Source: Rebecca billardiae RCC1528 (Eukaryota; Protista; Haptophyta). From it: a stretch of DNA of 64,000 nucleotides. Location of the stretch: positions 3,100,001 to 3,164,000 of the forward strand of contig OZ251223.1 of assembly GCA_965240325.2 (NCBI GenBank), read 5' to 3'. Of the stretch, positions 6,210-31,065 are shown piece after piece. The stretch's first letter is position 1. Every line of letters begins with the position of its first letter. Below the pieces are notes generated by a model. It searched no databases, had not been told where the DNA came from, and saw only the letters and a program-made list of their open reading frames with translations. A program made the translations under genes and the position numbers.

Positions 6210-6275
6210 CTCAACTTCGTTGTTCACTACCCGAAGATCGGCGTAGCCGATCATAATATACACCGTAATATAGCT

Positions 6276-6316
6276 AGAGAGAGAGAGAGACTAGAGAGAG
6301 AGAGAGAGAGAGAGAG
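6276..6316. repeat. (GA)n microsatellite
   Basis: Interrupted GA dinucleotide run. Confidence 0.9.
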
Positions 6317-6691
6317 TAGACTATGATATACCGGGACCGATATCGCCCGCGGCCGCAGTGTCAGCCAGTATATATTATTATGGCGCACGGCCCCCCCGAA
6401 AGGTCTGAGCTGTGAGCGAAAGCCGGGGGGGGGGCGGGCGGCGCACGTGCTCCGCAAAATCAAAAAAGATAATGGCGGCGGGGCGCGCGTGATATGCTGC
6501 TGGTGCTGGGGATTTTGTACTTTTAGCAGGGCGGGGAAGCTGCTCATGAATGACTACATATTCAACCCCCCGCGGCCCGATAGGCATAATGACGGACGGC
6601 TTGTTTTATACTATTCAATCAGTAGGCAGCAGCCCAATTAAGACGGTAACTCAGCCAGCAATACGCATCCGGCTGGATGAAGTGAATCCAG

Positions 6692-9600
6692 TCAGACACC
6701 TCCGCTGCGATGAAGGCGACCAGCAAGTGCTGACGAACCTCGTCGACGATCTCCGCGTCGTGGGAAGGAGGTGGACGACGGCCCTTCCGACGCCGAGTCG
6801 TCGTCGTGAAGGCCACCGATGAACGCGTCTGCCGACCCCTGGGCGCCGCTCAAAGGTGGCGAGCCGTAGACGGGGGTGAGGGCCGCGCCAGGTCTCAGGA
6901 TGGGCTCGTCCGACACGTCCGTCGAATCCTCGAGCCGCGTACGGCGGTAAGCCATCGGGGTGCGCAGACGCGCGAACATGGGTGACGCATAGCTGCTCGC
7001 GCCGTCCGAGTCGCGATCCGTTTGGCTGTTGCGCGCGGGCTGTCCTCCTCGGTCGCCGTCGCGGAACAGCAGGTTGATGTGATCGAGCACGGGCATGTGC
7101 GAGCGCGCACGGCTGCGAGTGCGCTGGGTGGCCGGCCCCCAGTGAGCGTTGGGCCAGCTGCCATCGCGCAGCTCTGCCTCGTTCCACGTGACGGCGCGGT
7201 GCCGCGAGCGGCGCGCCGGCTCCGGCTCAAAGCCAGCGAGCGCGCCGACGAGCGGCAAACTCTCGTGCGACCCTCCGTACGAAGGGCGGATTGAGCATCG
7301 TGGGCCGCTGGAAGGCGTGTTGCCCGCCGAGTTCGCCGACGGCCCATCGCGGCGCCTTGCCGCCGGCGATGCCGCCGGCGGCGAGAAGCTGGGCGTGCGC
7401 CCGGGCGGGGGGCTGGTCCCTACGGACGATGGCTTCGAGCACGTGATGGGCACGGGGTCGGGTCCGTCGCCGACCTCGGGCGCCTCGCCGATCGCGGTGA
7501 GCCCCAAATCGGACGCGAAGTCCACGTGCGGCAGCGGGGAGTCCGCCGGGGGAGCGGCCTCCTCCGCGCTGCCCGCCAAGCCGACCTGCGGCGCGAGCCG
7601 ATTGCTGCCGCCTGGCGTCCGGCTGCCGCGAGACAGCCGGGAGCCAGACTCTCCGCGCACGTAGCGGCGCGCAGCGGGCGTCGCGCTCGGCCACGAGAAG
7701 GCTGCCAGTGCGGTCCGGAGCGCGCCGCGCACCGCCGAGTTGAAGCGCTCGAATGCGTCGTCGCCGTCGTTCGCACACTGGCACGGGCCGCTGCAGCGGC
7801 ACAGCTCGACGCTCGAGCTGCGCGAGTGGCCGCCGCCCGACCCGTTGGGCGGGCGCGGCACCGGTTGGTCGTGCTCGCCGCCCACGTCGACGTCGAGCGG
7901 CGGCGGGGCGAAGGCCGAGCGGCCCGGGCGCAGCTTCGACGGCGTGATGGGCGGCGGCGACGGTGCGGGAAGCGCGGCGGCGGCTGCGAGCGCGCTCGCG
8001 GAGATGTTGCTCATGGACCTGGGGCCCAGCCCCCACGGCGCAGGCGGCAGGGTGGCGCTCGGCGCGGCCCCAGGGCCCTCCGGCGGCGGGGTGAGCGGCT
8101 GCGGCGTCGCAAACGCGGACTTCATGGGCCGCCGCTTGGACGGCGACTGAGACGACATGCCCCCCGTGCTCGGGCTGCTCGAGCTGAAGAGAGACGGGTC
8201 GGTGACCGAGCTCGCCGAGAGCGGCGGCGACGAGTGGCGCTGCATGACCGCGCTCGAGCCGAACTTCTCGCGGATGAGCTGGAAGATCATCTGCTTGTCC
8301 GACTGGAACGTGGCCTGCGCCGTGCGCGCGTCGAAGGACTGCAGCGCGGCCTCGACCGATCTGCGGTCCTGCATCAGCGCCTTCACGAACGAGCCGCGCT
8401 CCTCGGGCGCCATCGTCAGGTGGAAGATCACGCCCGCGTTGGTCGCGCAGTGCACCGCCTCGTACAGGCTGGTGCGCGCGCGCGCGGACGGCCGCGCCGG
8501 AGGCGGGGCGGGGAGGCGTGCGTGAGGCGTCGCGGTCGCGCGGGCGCGCCGCGGCGGTGCGCGACGGTGGCGCGCGCACCACCACACGCGGCTGAGGCAG
8601 ACGGGCTTGTCCCACGGGTCGAGCACCATGACGACGTGGCCGATGCGGGCGATCACGGCGCCGATGTGGTGCACCTGCTCCTGCACCGCGTGCTGCCGGA
8701 TGCAGAGGGCGTCGATCCACTGCGCGGCGCGCGGGAGGGACGGAGGGGGGGGCAGCACACGCGCGTGAGCGCCGGCGCGCCGGCGCGGCGCGCCCTCGGA
8801 GCAGCAGCGGGGGCCGCGATGGCGCACCAGGTAGGCGGCCTGCGCGTCGAGGCCGTGCAGCTCGAGGTACGCGTCCACGGCGTCGAGCAGCTTGAGAAAG
8901 GAGCACGACTGGGCATGGCACACGAAGAGGCTCGCGCCCGCGACCGCGGGCCGACCGTCCTCCGTCGTCTCGTCCTTCCGCAGCTCCGCGAGCGACAGTC
9001 CCGACTCGCGCGTGAGCGCGTGCAGCTTCTCGCTCAGCACGCGCGTCGGGTCGTCGCGCTCGATCCCGAGCTCGGCGCACAGCTCGCGCAAAAACCTGGG
9101 GCTCACGCCGAGCAGCAGGTGGCGCTGCAGGTTGCTGCCGCGCTCGGACATGCTGAGCACGGCCGCGGCCGACGGCGTGACCGATGCGGCGCGCTTCAGC
9201 CTCGCGGACATGCTCACCGTCGACTTGGACGTGCGCCGCAGCATGTCGTACAGCCGGCGCAGCGGCCCGCGCGCCGGCTCGACGCCGAGCGGCTTGAACG
9301 CCGCGACCAGCACGTACGAGAGGGCGGTGCTCGCGGCGGTGTGCGCCGACGAGAGCGCGAGCGCGCGCCACGGGTTGGCGTGGCACAGGGTGCGCCACAG
9401 CACGAGCGCGAGGATCTCCACCGTGGACCACGCGATGGCGAACCTCATGCTGCGCGAGATGCGCGTCGCGAGCGGCAGCGGCAGCGCCGCGAGCGCGTCG
9501 GTGGCGCTGCGGCGCACCGCAAGGCCGGCGAGGAGCGTCGCGACGAGCCGCAAGAGCGACCACACGAACCACACCGAGGTGACGACGCGCTCGCCCGTCC

Positions 9601-10645
9601 AGAGCAGCGCGCCCGCCATCGCCATGTCGCCGAGCGACGAGATGGCGACCGCGCTCGTGAGCCGCCGCTTGTGCGGCGCATCGCTCGGCGTCGCAAAGCC
9701 GCCGCTCCGCGTGCGATCGCCCAGCCCCTCGTGGAAGGCGATGAAGAGGGCGAACGAGAAGGCGGACGCGGGCAGGTCGAAGCCGCTGATGACCACCGTC
9801 GCCTCGACGGGGAGCGAGCGGAGCACGCCCGGGTCGACGATCAGGTACAGCGCGCGCAGCGTGTTGAGCACGAGCTCGAGCGCGAGCAGCCACTGCGCGG
9901 TCGTCCAGCGGAAGCCGCCGTCCGCCCTGAGGATGGCGTACAGGCGGCAGCCTGCGAGCTCGAGCACGGCGGCGACGCTGAAGAGCAGAAGGCCGTGGAC
10001 CAGCCACACCCAGACGGACGTGCGCATGCGTGTCCACGCGGACACGTCGGGGGACAGCCGGGCGCGCAAGGGGGCGTGGCCGAGGGCGCGCGCGGCCGGG
10101 TCGAGCTCGCCGAGCAGCGCGCGCGTCGCCGGCCCGTCCTCCAGGACAATGTCCGCGGCCAGGAGCGGCTGCGCCGGGGAGCGCGCGTCGCCCACGTGCC
10201 AGGCGTGCATCAGCTGGCCAGGCTCGGCGTCGAGCGCCGCGTCGAGGACCTCGTATCGCACGAGTGCCATGCCGCCGAGCGTGTCGCGCACGTACGTCGA
10301 CTGGCGCTCAAAGGAGCAGCGCAGCCCGTTGAACGCGTCGATGGGAGTGAGCACGAGCGCGCCGCGCATGGAGGCCGGGCGTGGTCCTGTGTACGCCCGC
10401 GGGCAGCCCGCGCCCGCCCACTCATCCATGCGCACGTGCGCGAGATGGCCTTCGGCGGCGAAGCGCCGAGGCGCAAAATCTGGTCGCGCAGCCGCGAGGT
10501 CGAGGTCCGCCACCAGCGGCGGCCCCGAGGTCAGCACGAGCCCAGCGTGCGCACGCGGGAGCTGGGCAATCGAGAGCATCGCCAGCACCACCGCGCACGC
10601 CGCCGCGCGCGGCTCGCCGCGGCGCCCGCAGGCGGCGCTCCTCAT
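6692..10645 (-). CDS. Predicted receptor: signal peptide + PA-like ectodomain + 7TM + cytosolic HET/TIR-like domain (paralog 1)
   Basis: Signal peptide ...AVVLAMLSIAQLPRAHA; PA-like segment GCP...GALVL...CSFERQ...LGGMALV; seven hydrophobic helices. After removing in-frame introns 8720-8827 and 8469-8579 the C-terminal domain reads FVCHAQ...YLWIDALCIRQH...HVVMVLDPWDKPVCLSRVWCLYE, followed by a long Ser/Pro-rich tail. Start codon and 3' end are uncertain. Confidence 0.75.
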   Translation of the reverse strand: MRSAACGRRGEPRAAACAVVLAMLSIAQLPRAHAGLVLTSGPPLVADLDLAAARPDFAPRRFAAEGHLAHVRMDEWAGAGCPRAYTGPRPASMRGALVLTPIDAFNGLRCSFERQSTYVRDTLGGMALVRYEVLDAALDAEPGQLMHAWHVGDARSPAQPLLAADIVLEDGPATRALLGELDPAARALGHAPLRARLSPDVSAWTRMRTSVWVWLVHGLLLFSVAAVLELAGCRLYAILRADGGFRWTTAQWLLALELVLNTLRALYLIVDPGVLRSLPVEATVVISGFDLPASAFSFALFIAFHEGLGDRTRSGGFATPSDAPHKRRLTSAVAISSLGDMAMAGALLWTGERVVTSVWFVWSLLRLVATLLAGLAVRRSATDALAALPLPLATRISRSMRFAIAWSTVEILALVLWRTLCHANPWRALALSSAHTAASTALSYVLVAAFKPLGVEPARGPLRRLYDMLRRTSKSTVSMSARLKRAASVTPSAAAVLSMSERGSNLQRHLLLGVSPRFLRELCAELGIERDDPTRVLSEKLHALTRESGLSLAELRKDETTEDGRPAVAGASLFVCHAQSCSFLKLLDAVDAYLELHGLDAQAAYLVRHRGPRCCSEGAPRRRAGAHARVLPPPPSLPRAAQWIDALCIRQHAVQEQVHHIGAVIARIGHVVMVLDPWDKPVCLSRVWWCARHRRAPPRRARATATPHARLPAPPPARPSARARTSLYEAVHCATNAGVIFHLTMAPEERGSFVKALMQDRRSVEAALQSFDARTAQATFQSDKQMIFQLIREKFGSSAVMQRHSSPPLSASSVTDPSLFSSSSPSTGGMSSQSPSKRRPMKSAFATPQPLTPPPEGPGAAPSATLPPAPWGLGPRSMSNISASALAAAAALPAPSPPPITPSKLRPGRSAFAPPPLDVDVGGEHDQPVPRPPNGSGGGHSRSSSVELCRCSGPCQCANDGDDAFERFNSAVRGALRTALAAFSWPSATPAARRYVRGESGSRLSRGSRTPGGSNRLAPQVGLAGSAEEAAPPADSPLPHVDFASDLGLTAIGEAPEVGDGPDPVPITCSKPSSVGTSPPPGRTPSFSPPAASPAARRRDGPSANSAGNTPSSGPRCSIRPSYGGSHESLPLVGALAGFEPEPARRSRHRAVTWNEAELRDGSWPNAHWGPATQRTRSRARSHMPVLDHINLLFRDGDRGGQPARNSQTDRDSDGASSYASPMFARLRTPMAYRRTRLEDSTDVSDEPILRPGAALTPVYGSPPLSGAQGSADAFIGGLHDDDSASEGPSSTSFPRRGDRRRGSSALAGRLHRSGGV

Positions 10646-11189
10646 GGTCCGCCCAATGGGCTGCCACGCTCGACAGTGGGCTGACAGCATGCTGCCGCCC
10701 GCCACCGTGGTCACCAGTGAGCAAGTGCGCACACGCGGGCGTCGAGAATTCGCGGTTTCCAGCGATCGGTGGCTCCGCACGGTTCATGAGCTGCATGAGC
10801 GACCACGCGGTCGCAACTTGAGGGGGTCCCCGCTCTGGACACTAGCTACCACTGGACAGATGCACGCCTATCATTGAGCAGTTTATAAAAAGTTTCGTCG
10901 AGTGAGCGCGCCAGCTCCGTCAACCACAAACATGATATGACGTGAGAATTGAGAACCCGCGCGGTGCCAGGTTAAGTCACCCGCGTACCTCGCGGGGGTA
11001 CACATATATCAAGTGAACTGCCCAGAGTATTCATATCGGTTAACTCTATGCACTCTCAAATCTCAATCCACTCATCAATCAGGGGCGTTCCCCGCACTGG
11101 TCATACGCCAAATCGAACCGCGTTCCTATTGAAATTGGCTTCCTCTATTTAAAGCGGGTACATTTGATTACGGCCCGCGCCAGTCCGGT

Positions 11190-25700: not shown

Positions 25701-28700
25701 TCATCCAGCGTGAGCCTGAGGGCGATGAGCATTGACCCCGCCGCCAACGACCGAGGCCGAGCGGGTCAACGCGGGCGGGCTGTCTGCCTGGTTGTTGGGA
25801 TCGGCGTTGGATCGCCGCGCGCTGCGCCACAGCTGAGCGCGTGAGCCCCAGTCCTCGGAGCGGGAGGCCGTGCTGCTACTCCCCTCCTTGGGGCGCGGCG
25901 GGCCCCGCTGCCATGGCCGCATCGCGGTGGGTGGCCCCGCGCTCGGCGCGGTCGCGGTGCGCGAGACCACGCTCCAGCTCAGGTACCCCACCGCCGCCCG
26001 GATGGCTGTGCGCACGGTCGCGTTGAACGCGTCCAGCGCCGCCTCCGCGTCCGCGGGGTCGCGCTCGAGGCCCGCCGCGCGCAGCTGTGCCGCGCTCAGC
26101 CCGCTCGGCGCAAACTTGGAGACGATCAGCTCGAGGATGCGCGCGCGGTCGTCTGCGAGCGAAGCCTCGGCGTGCCGCGCGTCGAAGGAGGTGAGTGCCT
26201 CGCACACGCGCGTGCGGTCGCGGTCGAGTGCGCGGAGGAAGCTCTCGCGCTGCGTGCGCGAGAGCGCGAGCGAGAACTCGACCGGCCGGCTGCCGCCACC
26301 GCCGCCACCGCTGCCGCCCGCGCCGCCGCTGCCCTCAGCCTCCGGCTGCTGCTCGTCTGCCGCGCCCTGCCACGCGCGCGCGCTGCGGCGCTGCGTGTTC
26401 GCCTGCATGATCTCGTACAGGCACCTGGTGCGCGCGCGTGCGCAGGCCACGCCCAACGTGCGGCGCCGCGAGTTGGCGGGCGAGGCGGCGGTCAAGCCGC
26501 GTGCGGACGATACCGGCCGCCGGAGCGCGCGCGCGCGTGGGAGGGAGGGGCGTCTGCGGGGCGGGAGGCACGCGCGCACCACACGCGCGTGAGGGCGATC
26601 GGCTTGTCCCACGGCGAGAGGACGGCCACCATCCGGCCGATTTGGCGCAGGATCGCGCCGATGTGCAGCACGTCCGCGTCGACGCGGTGCTGCCGGATGC
26701 AGCACAGGCTGGGCGGCGCAAGAGGCGTGCGCCGCGTGCGCGGGCGGCGCGTTCCGCACTCGGCCTCACGGCGCGGCCGAGCGGCGCGGCGCGAGCGCGC
26801 GGCGGCGCGTGGGCCGGTCGGCCCGGGTGCGCGGCCAGGTGGGCGCGCAGGCGAGCGCGCACTCGATCCACAGGTAGGTGCGCGCCGCGTCGAGTGAGTG
26901 CAGCTCCATGTGTAGACTGACCGCATCGAGCATGTCCACAAACGAACACGCCTGGGCGTGGCTTACAAAGAGGGTGGCCGGACGCACCGCCGCGCGCCCG
27001 TCCGCCGTCCGCGCCGAGCGCTTGAGCTCGCACAGCGCGAGCCGTGAGGCGGCGGTGATCTCGCGCACGATCTCGCCCGCGCGGTACGACGTGTCCGCCG
27101 CGCCGAGCCCATGCGCCGCGGCGAACTCGCGCAGGAAGGCGAGGGAGACGCCGAGGCCGAGGTGTGGAGGGAAGCCGCCCGTTCCCGCGAGCGCGCGCCG
27201 CTGCGTGTGCGCGGAGCCGAGCGGGGAGCTGGGCTTCATGGCGGCGCAGCAGATGGACAGACGCCGGCCGGCACTCGGCGAGCCGCCACTCGGCGGGCTG
27301 CTGCCGGTAGCGCTCACTCGCTTGCCTCGCTCGGTGGGCGGCGAAGGTGAGCGCGCGCCGCGCGTGTCCGGCGCGGACGGCGCGTCCAAGCGCCCAGCAC
27401 CCTCGCAGCGCGCAGGGTGGACGCGCGCAGAGGCCCCGGGCAGGGCTGCCAGCAGGGCTCGGCTCGCCACGGCGATCGGCGAGCGCGGCGGTGTGGGTGT
27501 GTCGACCGGCGCCGCATGCCGCTCCTTGCCACCGGATCCGGCGGGCACTGCCGATGGGCGCATCACGTGGCCTGCCGCGCGCTCGAGCTCGCAACTGCCT
27601 TTGCCGCCAACACTTTGGCCGTTGCTGCCGCCCCCGCCCGCCACGGGATGCAGCGCTGCCGTCGGCGGCGGCACGGCCGGGGGCACGAGTGGATGCTCGC
27701 CCAGCATCGACGCCGCGTCCACCTCCCGCAGCCCCGGCTGCTTCGGCGCCCCCTCCTCCACGGCTGCGAGCTCGTCGGCAGCCGTTGACGTGACGCTTTC
27801 GATCGAGAGCCGCGATGAGCCGTCGCGCGCGCGGGCCTTGTCGTGCGCGCCGCCGTGCGACTCGCCGCTGCCGCGTCGCGAGGAGGGGGTCGAGCGCTTG
27901 CGGCCGATCTGCATCACGCGCGATCGGCGCAGCTCGGCGACATCTAGGCTGCGCGCCAGCGCGCCGAGCGTCTGCGAGCGCGCTTTGCGCCCCCGTCGCC
28001 GCTCGAAGTGGGCGTGGCCGCTCGGCAGCCGCTGCCGCCGCCGATCTGCCGCGTCGTCGGTGTCTGTCGCGCTCAGCGGTCGGCGCTGGGCGGGCAGGTC
28101 GGCGCCTGTCGGCTCGGAGGCCCTCCGTTCCGAAGCAGGTGGGCTCTCTTGCGCTGCGCGCGAGCTCGCCACGCACGCGCGCACCCCAGCCGCCAGCCCG
28201 TTGGCTGCGCGCTCGAGCGGGCCGTGCACGATCGCGACGCCAATCGGCACGAACACCTTCAGCTTGGCCACGGTGAGGCACGCGTGCACGACCGTCAGTG
28301 GCGCGGGCTGCAGGAGGCGCGCCCACGGGCGGAAGAGGCACGGCTGCCAGAACGGGCCGACCACCACGCCGAGCGCAACGAGCACGAGCACGCGGCGCGT
28401 CTCGCGGACGAGGTAGCTGAGCACGACGGGCGGCGACGCGCCTGCGTACAGGCCCATGCGCGCCCGGCGGTGCGCGTACAGCGCAAAGGCGCAGATCGGG
28501 ATGGGCAGCAGTGAGGTGGACCACGACAGGCGCAGCGTGCCGGCCGGGGAGACGTCGAACAAAGTCGGTGAGTAGAGCAGCAACAGATCCGCGCCCACCG
28601 CCAGCAGCAGCAGCAGGAGCGCCAGACGGCGGTAGAAGCGCGTGCCGATCGAGAGCGAGACCAGCCCGGCCGCGTCGCTCGCCTCGCAGAAGTACACGAG

Positions 28701-29579
28701 GAACAGGAAGGTAGAGAGCGAGGACAGGTCGTACGGCGCGGTGCGTAGACGCACCGCCACGCCATATGACAGGCGCCCCGGCCAGAAGAAGATCGGGTCC
28801 AGCACCACCTGCGCGAGCCGCAGCCCGTTGGCGCTCACCTCGAGGCCGAGCATCAGCTGCGGGATCGTGGCGCGCACGCGCCCGTCCGCGCGGAGGAAGC
28901 TGACGAGGCGCGACACGGCCATCTCGAGCGCGAACGCAACCACGAGGGCGAGCACAACCGTCCACAGCGTGAAGAACCACGTCGTGAACAGCCGATCGAA
29001 CGCCGAGCTCGATGGCGCGAGCGTGCCCCGCGCCGCGCGACCCGAGCGCAGCGACGCGATGAGCGGTGCGGCCGCGGCCGACGTGATGTCTGCACCGATC
29101 AGGCCGTCAAACGCGCGCACGTCGCCGTTGAGCCACAGCCGAGAGATGTACCCCGGCACGGGCCGCAATGGCAAGCTCTGCTCGCTGAACGACAGCCAGC
29201 CAGCCGCGCCGAGCGCAGCGGCGGCGCGCGCATGACGCTCCGGGCTGCAGACGAAGGACCTCGCGTGCACGGCGATGACCAGCGCGCCGTGCAGGCGGGA
29301 CGCGTGCCCCTCCCCGACGTATTCGGGCGGGCATCCGCGCCACTCGGTCTCCTCCGTGAGCACGAGCGGCGCACTCACGGGCGCGGCGTCTGCGGGCGTG
29401 AAGCCGTAGCGTGGAGCGTCGAGTACATCGCCTGAGTCGAGCACGAGGTGTGCCCTGGCGACAGCGGGCGCGAGCGCGAGAGCCATGGCGAGCGACCTCC
29501 AAGAGAGTATGCCCAGCTGAGGACGACACGACCTTCGCCGCCTCGGCCGGGGCGCCAACGCGCCCAGCGTGGCGAGCAT
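25701..29579 (-). CDS. Predicted receptor: signal peptide + PA-like ectodomain + 7TM + cytosolic HET/TIR-like domain (paralog 2)
   Basis: Colinear with paralog 1: WRGCPP..G...GALVI...CSPER, seven TM helices, LGVSLAFLRE, LFVSHAQACSF. Removing introns 26709-26862 and 26425-26579 restores YLWIDLCCIRQH...LSPWDKPIALTRVWCLYE. The start could be 29486 instead. Confidence 0.75.
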
Positions 29580-31065
29580 CGTCCGCTCGACGCCTTCGAG
29601 GGGAGGAGTGTCGCCACCGCCAGGCCGACGACACGAGGGGATCCAGCCCAGGCGTTGGGAATCCACAATATGAACGGGGTTCAGAAGGTTCGCCTCATCA
29701 AGCAAACTGTACATCGCACATTCATGAATCAGCGGACGAATCTTCGTCGATCATCAGATGTCATTTAAGTATCTTACCTCCCCTGTGAAGCCGGAAGCTG
29801 CCGCCGTCGTGCGCCGGCCCGGCCGCTCCGACGCGTTGGTGCCCGCGTGGGCATTCCGGGCAGCAATAAACCCGCCGTACTCGTCGTCCCCAACCGCGTG
29901 TTGGCCGTATACCTCACACTCACAGTCAGAGGCGAGCCTCTGCGCCGCGCCGGGCGGGTCACGCCGCATGCGCGGCTGCGGCCCGGGTCTACTACTAGCC
30001 CGGACCCTGTCACCCGTTACCGGCCGGCGCGCGGGGCTGGCAACCGCAATGAGAGTCTCAGACCGATAGTGAGCCGGAAGAAGCAGAAGAGCCTAACCGT
30101 CGGAAGGTGACATCATCAGTAACTACCGCCTGTTTCGTTTGAGCATCATCCGCAACAATGAACGTGGCTCATCAGTGACGTATTATGAGAGTACAGTAGC
30201 TTGGAAGTTCAGCCTTCAGGCTGCTGACGTGGCCCGTGACAGACAGGCGTGGCTCAGCGGCGCGGGACCTGATGACGAGTGACTACTACTAGGCCAGTAC
30301 TGTCACCGTGCGCAGCGTCACGGATCACACAGCCGGATGATGTCATCATCATGCGGTCATTTATCACTACTGAAATCGTAGTGCTAAATAGCAGTACCAA
30401 AAAGTAGTAGGGGGCAGAGATCGTGTACTACCTACTCGTCGCCAGCTCTCGTTGACTCGTCGTCTGCCCGTGACAGCAGCTCCATTAGCTGCTACGGTAC
30501 GGCCAGATGTGAGATGGTGGCGGGTACTTCGTTCGATGGTGGCTGCCCAGGTAGTGCGGCACGTGCGTGCCTCTGGACGGGCCGTGGCGAGGTCGCCAAA
30601 TCGCATGGCATCGTCCCAACGAAGGCTGCTAGTACCCCTGACCAGCTTGCTAGCCATGCCGGTCGTTGATCATCCCGCCGTTGACAGGCGCGCACGTGCC
30701 ACACATAGCACACGCCACACGTATGCGCACGGCAGCCGTGTCGGACTGGCGCGGTCGCACGACTAGTTACCGCACAGCCTGGCGGAACTACATTCAGATT
30801 GTCAGACTCATGCTGGGAGTCTGCTAGCAGTGAATTTGTCGTCAGGGACGCGGTCATGGAATCCTCAGATCGCGAACTGAAAGTCTGATGAATTGATATA
30901 GGTCTGCATACACCCTCGCCTGGCATGCCGGCATGCCTCAGACGTCATACTTGTACTAGCACCGCCGTCAGCTAGAAGGGTGATGATAGTCATGTACTAC
31001 TGGCCGGTCGTCAGCGCGCGCGACTTAATGTTATTGCATCATCAGCATCATGACGATGCCCTGTA

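Follow-up and report, generated by a model that had tools for sequence, protein, structure and literature searches.

The 64,000-nucleotide window of the Rebecca billardiae RCC1528 genome analysed here (contig OZ251223.1, positions 3,100,001 to 3,164,000) carries a gene, called gene A in the following, that combines three kinds of protein module in a single membrane protein. Gene A lies on the minus strand at window positions 6692-10645, with its ATG at 10645 and its stop at 6692, and all parts described below are on that strand. Its product is one polypeptide that passes the membrane seven times in type I orientation, with a cleavable signal peptide, an extracellular domain of the protease-associated (PA) kind, a core folded like a G-protein-coupled receptor (GPCR), and a cytosolic domain of about 220 residues. 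The latter is an unannotated domain of the TIR/HET superfamily and not a proven member of the Pfam families HET or TIR. As an architecture, it is well supported that gene A follows the logic of a Toll-like receptor built as a GPCR-bigram with this unannotated domain, so that known kinds of module are newly combined. That the protein is a receptor with ligand-driven signalling by its TIR/HET-like domain, through NAD+-type cleavage or through a defence or death signal, is a reading to which we give about even odds (a probability near 0.5). An earlier sequence-only reading of this stretch had described a signal peptide, an ectodomain of about 170 residues, seven helices and a cytosolic domain, and this layout is borne out by the sequence and by an AlphaFold model.

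When left unspliced, the frame from ATG to stop comprises 1317 stop-free codons. The GC fraction in the window is 0.55-0.79, and the stop-free frame alone was dropped as a proof of coding, as other frames around gene A likewise run for about 1000 codons without a stop. Coding status was judged instead by the periodicity of GC at third codon positions (GC3). Between roughly codons 70 and 1270, GC3 is 0.84-1.0 and second-position GC is much lower. Because GC3 is this high, we regard the frame as coding and not as a mere open frame in GC-rich DNA.

The motifs by which the cytosolic domain is recognised (FVCHAQ, LWIDALCIRQ and SRVWCLYE) become readable only after removal of two stop-free introns, just as the sequence-only reading had maintained. 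Intron 1 (8827-8720, 108 nt) and intron 2 (8579-8469, 111 nt) are both in frame, start with GTGCGC and end with CAG; their excision unites ...AAYL with WIDALCIRQ..., and ...SRVW with CLYE.... Both are very GC-rich (85-87%), and codon-position GC is flat within them (0.89/0.78/0.89 in intron 1 and 0.84/0.92/0.86 in intron 2), the values for the flanking exons being about 0.7/0.4/1.0. Dozens of homologues align over both splice joins with 0-2 gaps, none of the aligned homologues has an insertion at the intron 1 site, and several of those crossing the junctions are transcript assemblies (from MMETSP, and a 2.3 kb JGI contig). Identity to spliced gene A is 48% over 218 residues for homologue P0013, 50% for P0007 and 45% for P0006. 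In a paralogue within the same window (paralogue B, see below), the counterpart introns of 154 nt and 155 nt are frame-shifting, and the conserved motifs are found in different frames unless spliced. The similarity of the introns to each other is accounted for by composition and was set aside. On this comparative evidence, both gene A intervals appear to be introns.

Gene A is also covered by two Logan contigs, L001 (ERR14847151) and L002 (ERR14847148), which span window positions of about 6448-11137 with the introns included; the unspliced open reading frame (ORF) of paralogue B had no match in the public contig look-up. One explanation to be weighed here is that the gene model is wrong, either because both introns stay in the transcript, so that the LWID strand and the WCLxE helix would be interrupted and a seven-transmembrane (7TM) protein with a dead tail would result, or because gene A is a decaying paralogue. 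Both introns being in frame and stop-free, retention would not truncate the protein, and the two contigs, from runs that may be DNA or RNA, have the unspliced form. Against this stand a frame that is intact across 1317 codons with a strong GC3 bias, the retention of all nine nearly invariant residues of the cytosolic domain, and introns that lack codon bias and have donor and acceptor sequences identical to those of the frame-shifting introns of paralogue B. We consider a wrong gene model very improbable.

The cytosolic domain is encoded in three exon parts. The first (8828-9133, residues 505-606) contains a helical N-terminal subdomain and the first core strand with FVCHAQ; the second (8580-8719), which reads WIDALCIRQ ... 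DPWDKPVCLSRVW, contains the nearly invariant residues W, D, P, W, P, R and W; the third (8246-8468) provides CLYE with the conserved glutamate, the last core strand and C-terminal helices. In the spliced product, FVCHAQ, LWIDALCIRQ and SRVWCLYE occur in the order of the HET blocks within about 220-240 residues. The HET block pattern used for this comparison (strand-S-Y/H, LWIDxxCIxQ, RxWxxxE) was taken in part from the literature (PMC4986451). An alignment of 48 rows has nine positions that are at least 90% conserved, namely the H of SHA, the W and D of WxD, the P, W and P of PWxxP, and the R, W and E of RxWCLxE, and all nine residues are kept in both gene A and paralogue B. Among them, H73 of SHA is nearly invariant, and the glutamate, E152 of the alignment, is at least 90% conserved and retained in gene A. 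The last block of the gene family, RxWCLxE, is nearer to the plant TIR motif than to HET, WCLxE being the plant TIR motif that bears the catalytic glutamate. The helix that follows core strand three carries the conserved glutamate of the gene family, which comes about 83 residues past the first strand; the corresponding distance in SARM1, from 561 to E642, is 81 (aligned ranges). No Pfam family covers the cytosolic domain. Weak Pfam matches recur among 48 relatives, with HET found in seven (best E 2.7e-4), TIR_2 in two (best E 0.022) and ThsB_TIR in two. HET has been described as a distant relative of TIR and as a TIR-like death domain (PMC4986451, PMC12881547), and haptophyte homologues were already noted in 2014 (PMC4986451).

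The fold of the cytosolic domain was predicted for homologue P0013 (residues 85-306), using a 48-row alignment that included the three exon pieces of gene A. The model (predicted local distance difference test, pLDDT, 94.3; predicted template modelling score, pTM, 0.90) consists of a helical subdomain of about 60 residues, an alpha/beta core and C-terminal helices. A Foldseek comparison with solved structures has TIR domains in about 30 of its 50 best rows (E 0.07-0.8). The top rows obtained with VIA-align are TIR, ThsB and nucleoside 2-deoxyribosyltransferase structures at Z 5.3-6.1; in a second look, 48 of 50 rows were TIR or ThsB, the remaining two being nucleoside 2'-deoxyribosyltransferase. 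SARM1 (Z 6.6, 102 of 139 residues, root-mean-square deviation, rmsd, 3.4) and AbTir (Z 6.5, rmsd 2.8) lead the rows, with TRR-2 (Z 6.4) and MyD88 (Z 6.3) among those that follow, and about 100 of 135-140 target residues are covered. The case for a TIR fold is made because the list is uniform and the whole TIR domain is covered. In the ESM Atlas, the domain is matched by clusters of oomycete, green algal and haptophyte proteins that carry no annotation (template modelling score, TM, 0.83-0.88), several of them with TPR_10/TPR_12 arrays, and a basidiomycete cluster with 98% PF06985 members matches at TM 0.55 by query, over 173 residues and with an rmsd of 4.6. A HET domain of solved structure was not found for comparison. 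Predicted viral structures gave weak matches to TIR and transferase proteins, the best being a TIR/WD40 protein of Tetraselmis virus 1 (E 0.04). From the model, the core is thus predicted to have a TIR-type flavodoxin-like alpha/beta fold, on the strength of weak matches.

The membrane core (9302-10015, residues 211-448) is followed by a short helix 8 and by a basic, serine-rich juxtamembrane linker (9134-9301, residues 449-504) with a conserved GPL motif after helix 7. The N-terminal half of gene A (residues 33-470, aligned with 40 relatives) was modelled by AlphaFold with a pLDDT of 92.0 and a pTM of 0.89, giving seven helices of 22-34 residues each and the short helix 8. The core was compared exhaustively by VIA-align with 48,161 solved chains, and matched at Z 17.4-19.9 over 215-258 aligned residues (rmsd 3.2-4.8), the caution line of the tool for helical bundles being about 13. 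Each of the top 50 rows is either a GPCR (of class A, or in some rows of class C) or a designed GPCR fold. Foldseek (probability 1.00) found LPA1 at E 7e-4; its rank 49 is a chain of the LGR4-RSPO2-ZNRF3 entry. A presenilin- or SPPL2-like protein, as might be suspected from a PA domain joined to a multi-pass membrane part, was ruled out, since the bundle matches GPCRs at Z 18-20. A search of PDB sequences with the family profile had no match in the 7TM part, and neither a GPCR sequence family nor a motif for G-protein coupling could be detected. A GPCR fold of the membrane core is well supported by the model; its sequence falls into no known family.

These results bear on a second explanation, by which gene A would encode an ordinary GPCR with a tail that acts as an N-glycosidase on nucleosides or nucleotides (2-deoxyribosyltransferase/CMP-hydrolase type) or as a non-immune regulatory module. 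Class A GPCRs are indeed the best structural matches of the core, nucleoside 2-deoxyribosyltransferases reach Z 5.0-5.5 with the tail, which is within one unit of the TIR domains, and a CMP hydrolase and an N-deoxyribosyltransferase are among the viral structure matches. However, TIR entries occupy most of the top places in every list, the pattern of three motif blocks and the weak Pfam matches favour HET/TIR, and no sequence signature of a G-protein-coupling receptor was detected in the core, as just described, so that we regard this explanation as improbable.

The start codon and a predicted signal peptide are encoded at 10541-10645 (residues 1-35). Its n-region is basic, residues 14-32 are hydrophobic, and there is a cleavage-like site (AHA-G); relatives align with comparable hydrophobic N-terminal leaders. 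A signal peptide together with seven helices places the ectodomain outside the cell and the C-terminus in the cytosol, which is the side that the sequence-only reading had assigned to the C-terminal domain. The ectodomain (10031-10540, residues 36-205) has conserved cysteines in CPRAY and RCSFE and is an alpha/beta domain in the AlphaFold model of gene A. Of 38 relatives, 14 weakly match PF02225, the PA family (E 2.5e-4 at best), which is the only Pfam family to recur for the ectodomain. The family profile of the ectodomain matched the PA domain of the aminopeptidase 2ek8_A over its whole length at E 0.0038, and a longer profile did so at 8.1e-4. The closest shapes in the ESM Atlas are PA-bearing peptidases of families M28, M36 and S8, all at TM below 0.5, and a language-model look-alike search with the ectodomain gave results at chance level. 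The family consensus, C..Y.G...L.GA.V.......CS.E..AR.....GA.A, has both of its cysteines kept in gene A and agrees with the PA pattern. The sequence comparisons moderately support a PA identity of the ectodomain, and do so at the level of the family only.

Gene A is not alone in the window. Paralogue B (25701-29714, minus strand; introns 26862-26709 and 26579-26425) has the same three-part architecture, and its spliced product is 37% identical to that of gene A in the cytosolic domain (E 8e-54) and 28% identical in the N-terminal half (E 7e-26). The introns of both genes have the same GTGCGC donor and CAG acceptor, and their positions relative to the protein motifs are 8 nt and 3 nt apart; intron 1 is located before the W of LWID in gene A and inside the D codon in paralogue B. 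This offset could result from intron sliding or from independent gain.

A search of 1.84 billion representative proteins returned 227 relatives at E up to 0.001. Among the best 150 of these, 12 clusters have all three parts in one chain, at least 64 have the cytosolic domain and lack the receptor part, and 20 have the N-terminal half only, some of which are probably ORFs cut by introns. A full-length search limited to residues 1-480 returned gene A only. The complete architecture is exemplified by T492DRAFT_1004805 of Pavlovales sp. CCMP2436, an NCBI gene model of 796 residues annotated as "hypothetical protein", which also carries the C-terminal AFERFN motif described below at its end. The claim that 7TM part and tail belong to one chain is supported by this gene model and by relatives that have the three parts on single transcript contigs. 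To judge by its best named relatives, the receptor gene family belongs to pavlovophyte-type haptophytes; relatives are also named from Tetraselmis striata and from the chytrid Phlyctochytrium planicorne. The cytosolic domain by itself, or fused to TPR, EF-hand or ankyrin units, is found in oomycetes, green algae and a chytrid. Such receptor-less fusions involve TPR_10/TPR_12 arrays, EF-hands and ankyrin repeats (P0112, P0165, P0168, P0159, P0183). The TPR-linked relatives are the chytrid protein P0112 (KAJ3094704.1 from P. planicorne, 1807 residues, with two domain copies and TPR arrays) and two JGI proteins, to which the ESM Atlas shapes add oomycete and ascomycete clusters.

We favour a process in which ligand binding by the PA domain or by the helix bundle would change the conformation of the receptor or cause it to cluster, so bringing the TIR/HET-like domains together. 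By analogy to TIR enzymes and HET, the assembled domains may then cleave an NAD+-type nucleotide or emit another defence or cell-death signal without a separate adaptor. The activity of TIR enzymes is switched on by assembly. HET domains suffice to kill fungal cells (PMC12881547), and the resemblance of the TPR-array fusions to NLR-type proteins is counted in favour of the reading. NAD+ cleavage, cell death and independence of G proteins are properties that we infer for the gene A receptor. More tentatively, and with less than even confidence, we suggest a one-component immune or death receptor of haptophyte algae, of a so far undescribed kind, in which a GPCR-fold sensor with its PA ectodomain would directly switch its own nucleotide-cleaving TIR/HET-type domain, a cue from virus, grazer or kin being converted into NAD+-derived signalling or suicide, with the soluble and TPR-linked copies acting as downstream or parallel partners.

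Those same copies are open to another interpretation, namely that the domain is a non-enzymatic scaffold, by which the ligand-bound receptor recruits proteins with the same domain, as do the TIR domains of animal Toll-like receptors and MyD88, without any NAD+ cleavage. The large group of relatives noted above that have the domain without a receptor would supply possible partners, the TIR domains of MyD88, MAL, TRR-2, TRIF and the IL-1R family score level with the enzymatic ones, and an adaptor role for HET has been proposed by Dyrka et al. (PMC4986451). On the other hand, conservation reaches at least 90% for the glutamate of WCLxE and its neighbouring residues, and this suits a catalytic role better than that of a pure interface; the best matches include the TIR domains of SARM1, AbTir and SPARTA. 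We therefore consider a scaffold rather unlikely and prefer a receptor that signals through its own TIR/HET-like domain.

A number of results count against this preferred reading. The HET score of gene A is below the Pfam gathering cut-off (PF06985, 22.5 bits), with 11.8 bits for the unspliced protein and 17.2 bits for the WIDALCIRQ exon alone, a match that covers HET profile positions 51-75. TIR profiles (PF01582, PF13676, PF08937) had no match in gene A, and Pfam searches with the whole protein, its pieces and ten relatives returned nothing above threshold. The family profile of the cytosolic domain found no TIR chain, nor any chain at all, among PDB sequences; a profile search of 5.8 billion proteins (E up to 10, with 7444 candidates of 122-388 residues sharing exact words) retrieved no HET-annotated protein; and PADLOC reported no TIR model match and nothing else of relevance. 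Pfam 7TM families were not matched by any of 41 relatives, and the ectodomain of gene A itself had no Pfam match, PA (PF02225) included. The cytosolic model is that of P0013, 48% identical to gene A, and not of gene A itself, and its fold matches are weak, with Foldseek E values of at least 0.07 and with Z below 8, a range for which the tool warns and in which a match may reflect a common arrangement. The putative equivalence of the conserved glutamate to SARM1 E642 and RUN1 E100 rests on motif and spacing. The only public contigs with gene A carry its unspliced form, ERR14847148 and ERR14847151 being runs that may be DNA or RNA. Finally, fungal HET domains themselves are without known biochemical activity (PMC12881547).

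Two labels of the sequence-only reading have to be narrowed in view of these results. Its PA ectodomain holds at the family level, through the weak PF02225 matches and the profile match to 2ek8_A, and fails as a Pfam assignment of gene A. Its HET (TIR-like) domain holds as a resemblance, which comprises the block order, the TIR fold at Z 5-6.6 and the HET cluster at TM 0.55, and not as a membership, given the scores of 11.8-17.2 versus 22.5 bits and the lack of a TIR match. Of the hits to PA, 7TM and HET/TIR that it expected from Pfam and from AlphaFold with Foldseek, the structural ones appeared, as a GPCR fold for the 7TM part and as TIR-type matches for the tail, while no PA, 7TM, HET or TIR match in gene A exceeded the Pfam threshold.

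Beyond the cytosolic domain, gene A continues with a tail rich in Pro, Ser, Ala and Gly (6692-8245), which has no Pfam match and, with a GC3 of 0.84-0.96, is probably coding. It contains a conserved C-terminal motif at 7688-7765 (DAFERFNSAVRGAL...SW), with 51-56% identity to P0003 and P0155 at their C-terminal ends. This short, amphipathic motif, AFERFN..VR.A....A..SW, is conserved in family members, where it forms the C-terminus or lies close to it (P0003 at 736-762, P0155 at 328-354, the C-terminus of P0186, and paralogue B). In gene A it is preceded by about 160 low-complexity residues after the domain and is followed by about 330 more residues. In the last ~45 codons (6692-6835), GC3 drops to 0.38-0.54 as compared with about 0.9 upstream, and because the bias is lost there, the true 3' end of gene A is uncertain; the stop at 6692 may not be the real C-terminus if an unrecognised 3' intron or a 3' untranslated region is present. 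The ends of the contigs L001 and L002 differ by 25-30 nt between the two runs, and the first ~20 bases of L001 differ from the window. A run of G at 6425-6440 is found about 10-35 bases past the contig ends at 6448 and 6473, and a simple repeat of the CT/GA type, indicated by ORF translations only, is located at about 6250-6300 between gene A and its downstream neighbour.

Bacteria, plants and animals alike use TIR-type domains for immune signalling, and cell death in fungi is driven by HET domains. The sensing of attackers by protists and algae is largely uncharted. If our reading is true, a seven-helix receptor with its own TIR-type tail would represent a new wiring of surface sensing to TIR chemistry and a new fusion of a GPCR to an enzyme, and the gene family would provide candidate receptors for interactions of algae with viruses or grazers. 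In addition, a widespread eukaryotic domain without a Pfam family, which is placed between HET and TIR and has kept the putative catalytic glutamate, could help to clarify the biochemistry of HET.

Compared with fungal HET proteins (PF06985; HET-E/D/R, TOL, PIN-C), the domain of gene A is alike in its size of about 220 residues, in having three blocks in the same order and in its TIR-related fold, and the TPR and ankyrin repeat arrays attached to the domain in relatives recall the layout of HET-NLR proteins. It differs in scoring below the threshold, in the first block, which is FVSHA(Q/W) in the gene family and ALSYxWG in HET, and in its position at the C-terminal side of a seven-pass receptor, whereas HET is found in soluble or NLR proteins. 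The TIR domains of SARM1, AbTir, plant TNL, Thoeris ThsB and SPARTA are the best matches of the core and also have a conserved glutamate about 80 residues past the first strand. Unlike in these, the gene A domain has no significant sequence or profile match to TIR; the gene family has an additional helical subdomain of about 60 residues at the N-terminal side and additional helices at the C-terminal side, and the loop that leads to the glutamate helix is longer. PA-TM-RING ligases (ZNRF3/RNF13), vacuolar sorting receptors and SPPL2 use a luminal or extracellular N-terminal PA domain for recognition of ligand or substrate, and gene A likewise has an N-terminal PA-like domain ahead of its membrane spans; none of these proteins is known to join the PA domain to a GPCR-fold core or to a TIR-like tail.

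Among algae, Gephyrocapsa huxleyi has membrane-anchored TIR proteins with extracellular regions or with several N-terminal membrane helices, which appear early in virus infection (PMC12489294). They differ from gene A in being defined by Pfam TIR families via HHsuite; the worked example has one membrane helix and an ectodomain resembling EGF and leucine-binding proteins, and the text of that paper is without PA or GPCR fold (PMC12489294). In the literature searched, which was queried for TIR combined with GPCR, 7TM or protease-associated and for HET combined with GPCR, a PA-7TM-TIR/HET protein is not described, in agreement with the sequence-only reading, to which no such protein was known. 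The GPCR-bigrams of oomycetes and other protists, for which the types GPCR-PIPK, -INPP, -AC, -PDE and -TKL are named and TIR is absent from the text (PMC6033456), are comparable in having an N-terminal 7TM domain of the GPCR type and a presumably catalytic C-terminal cytosolic domain. Gene A departs from them by its TIR/HET-type tail, which is not among the accessory domains of the named types, and by the addition of a folded PA ectodomain. The closest parallel in logic is with Toll-like and IL-1 receptors, in which, too, a single chain runs from a recognition domain outside the cell through a membrane span to a TIR-type domain in the cytosol, and it is in this one-chain logic that the proposed analogy to Toll-like receptors stands. 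In construction the two are distinct: Pfam finds no leucine-rich repeats in gene A, and in place of a leucine-rich repeat or Ig ectodomain and a single membrane pass, it combines a PA-like ectodomain with a seven-helix GPCR fold, and its TIR-like domain resembles HET.

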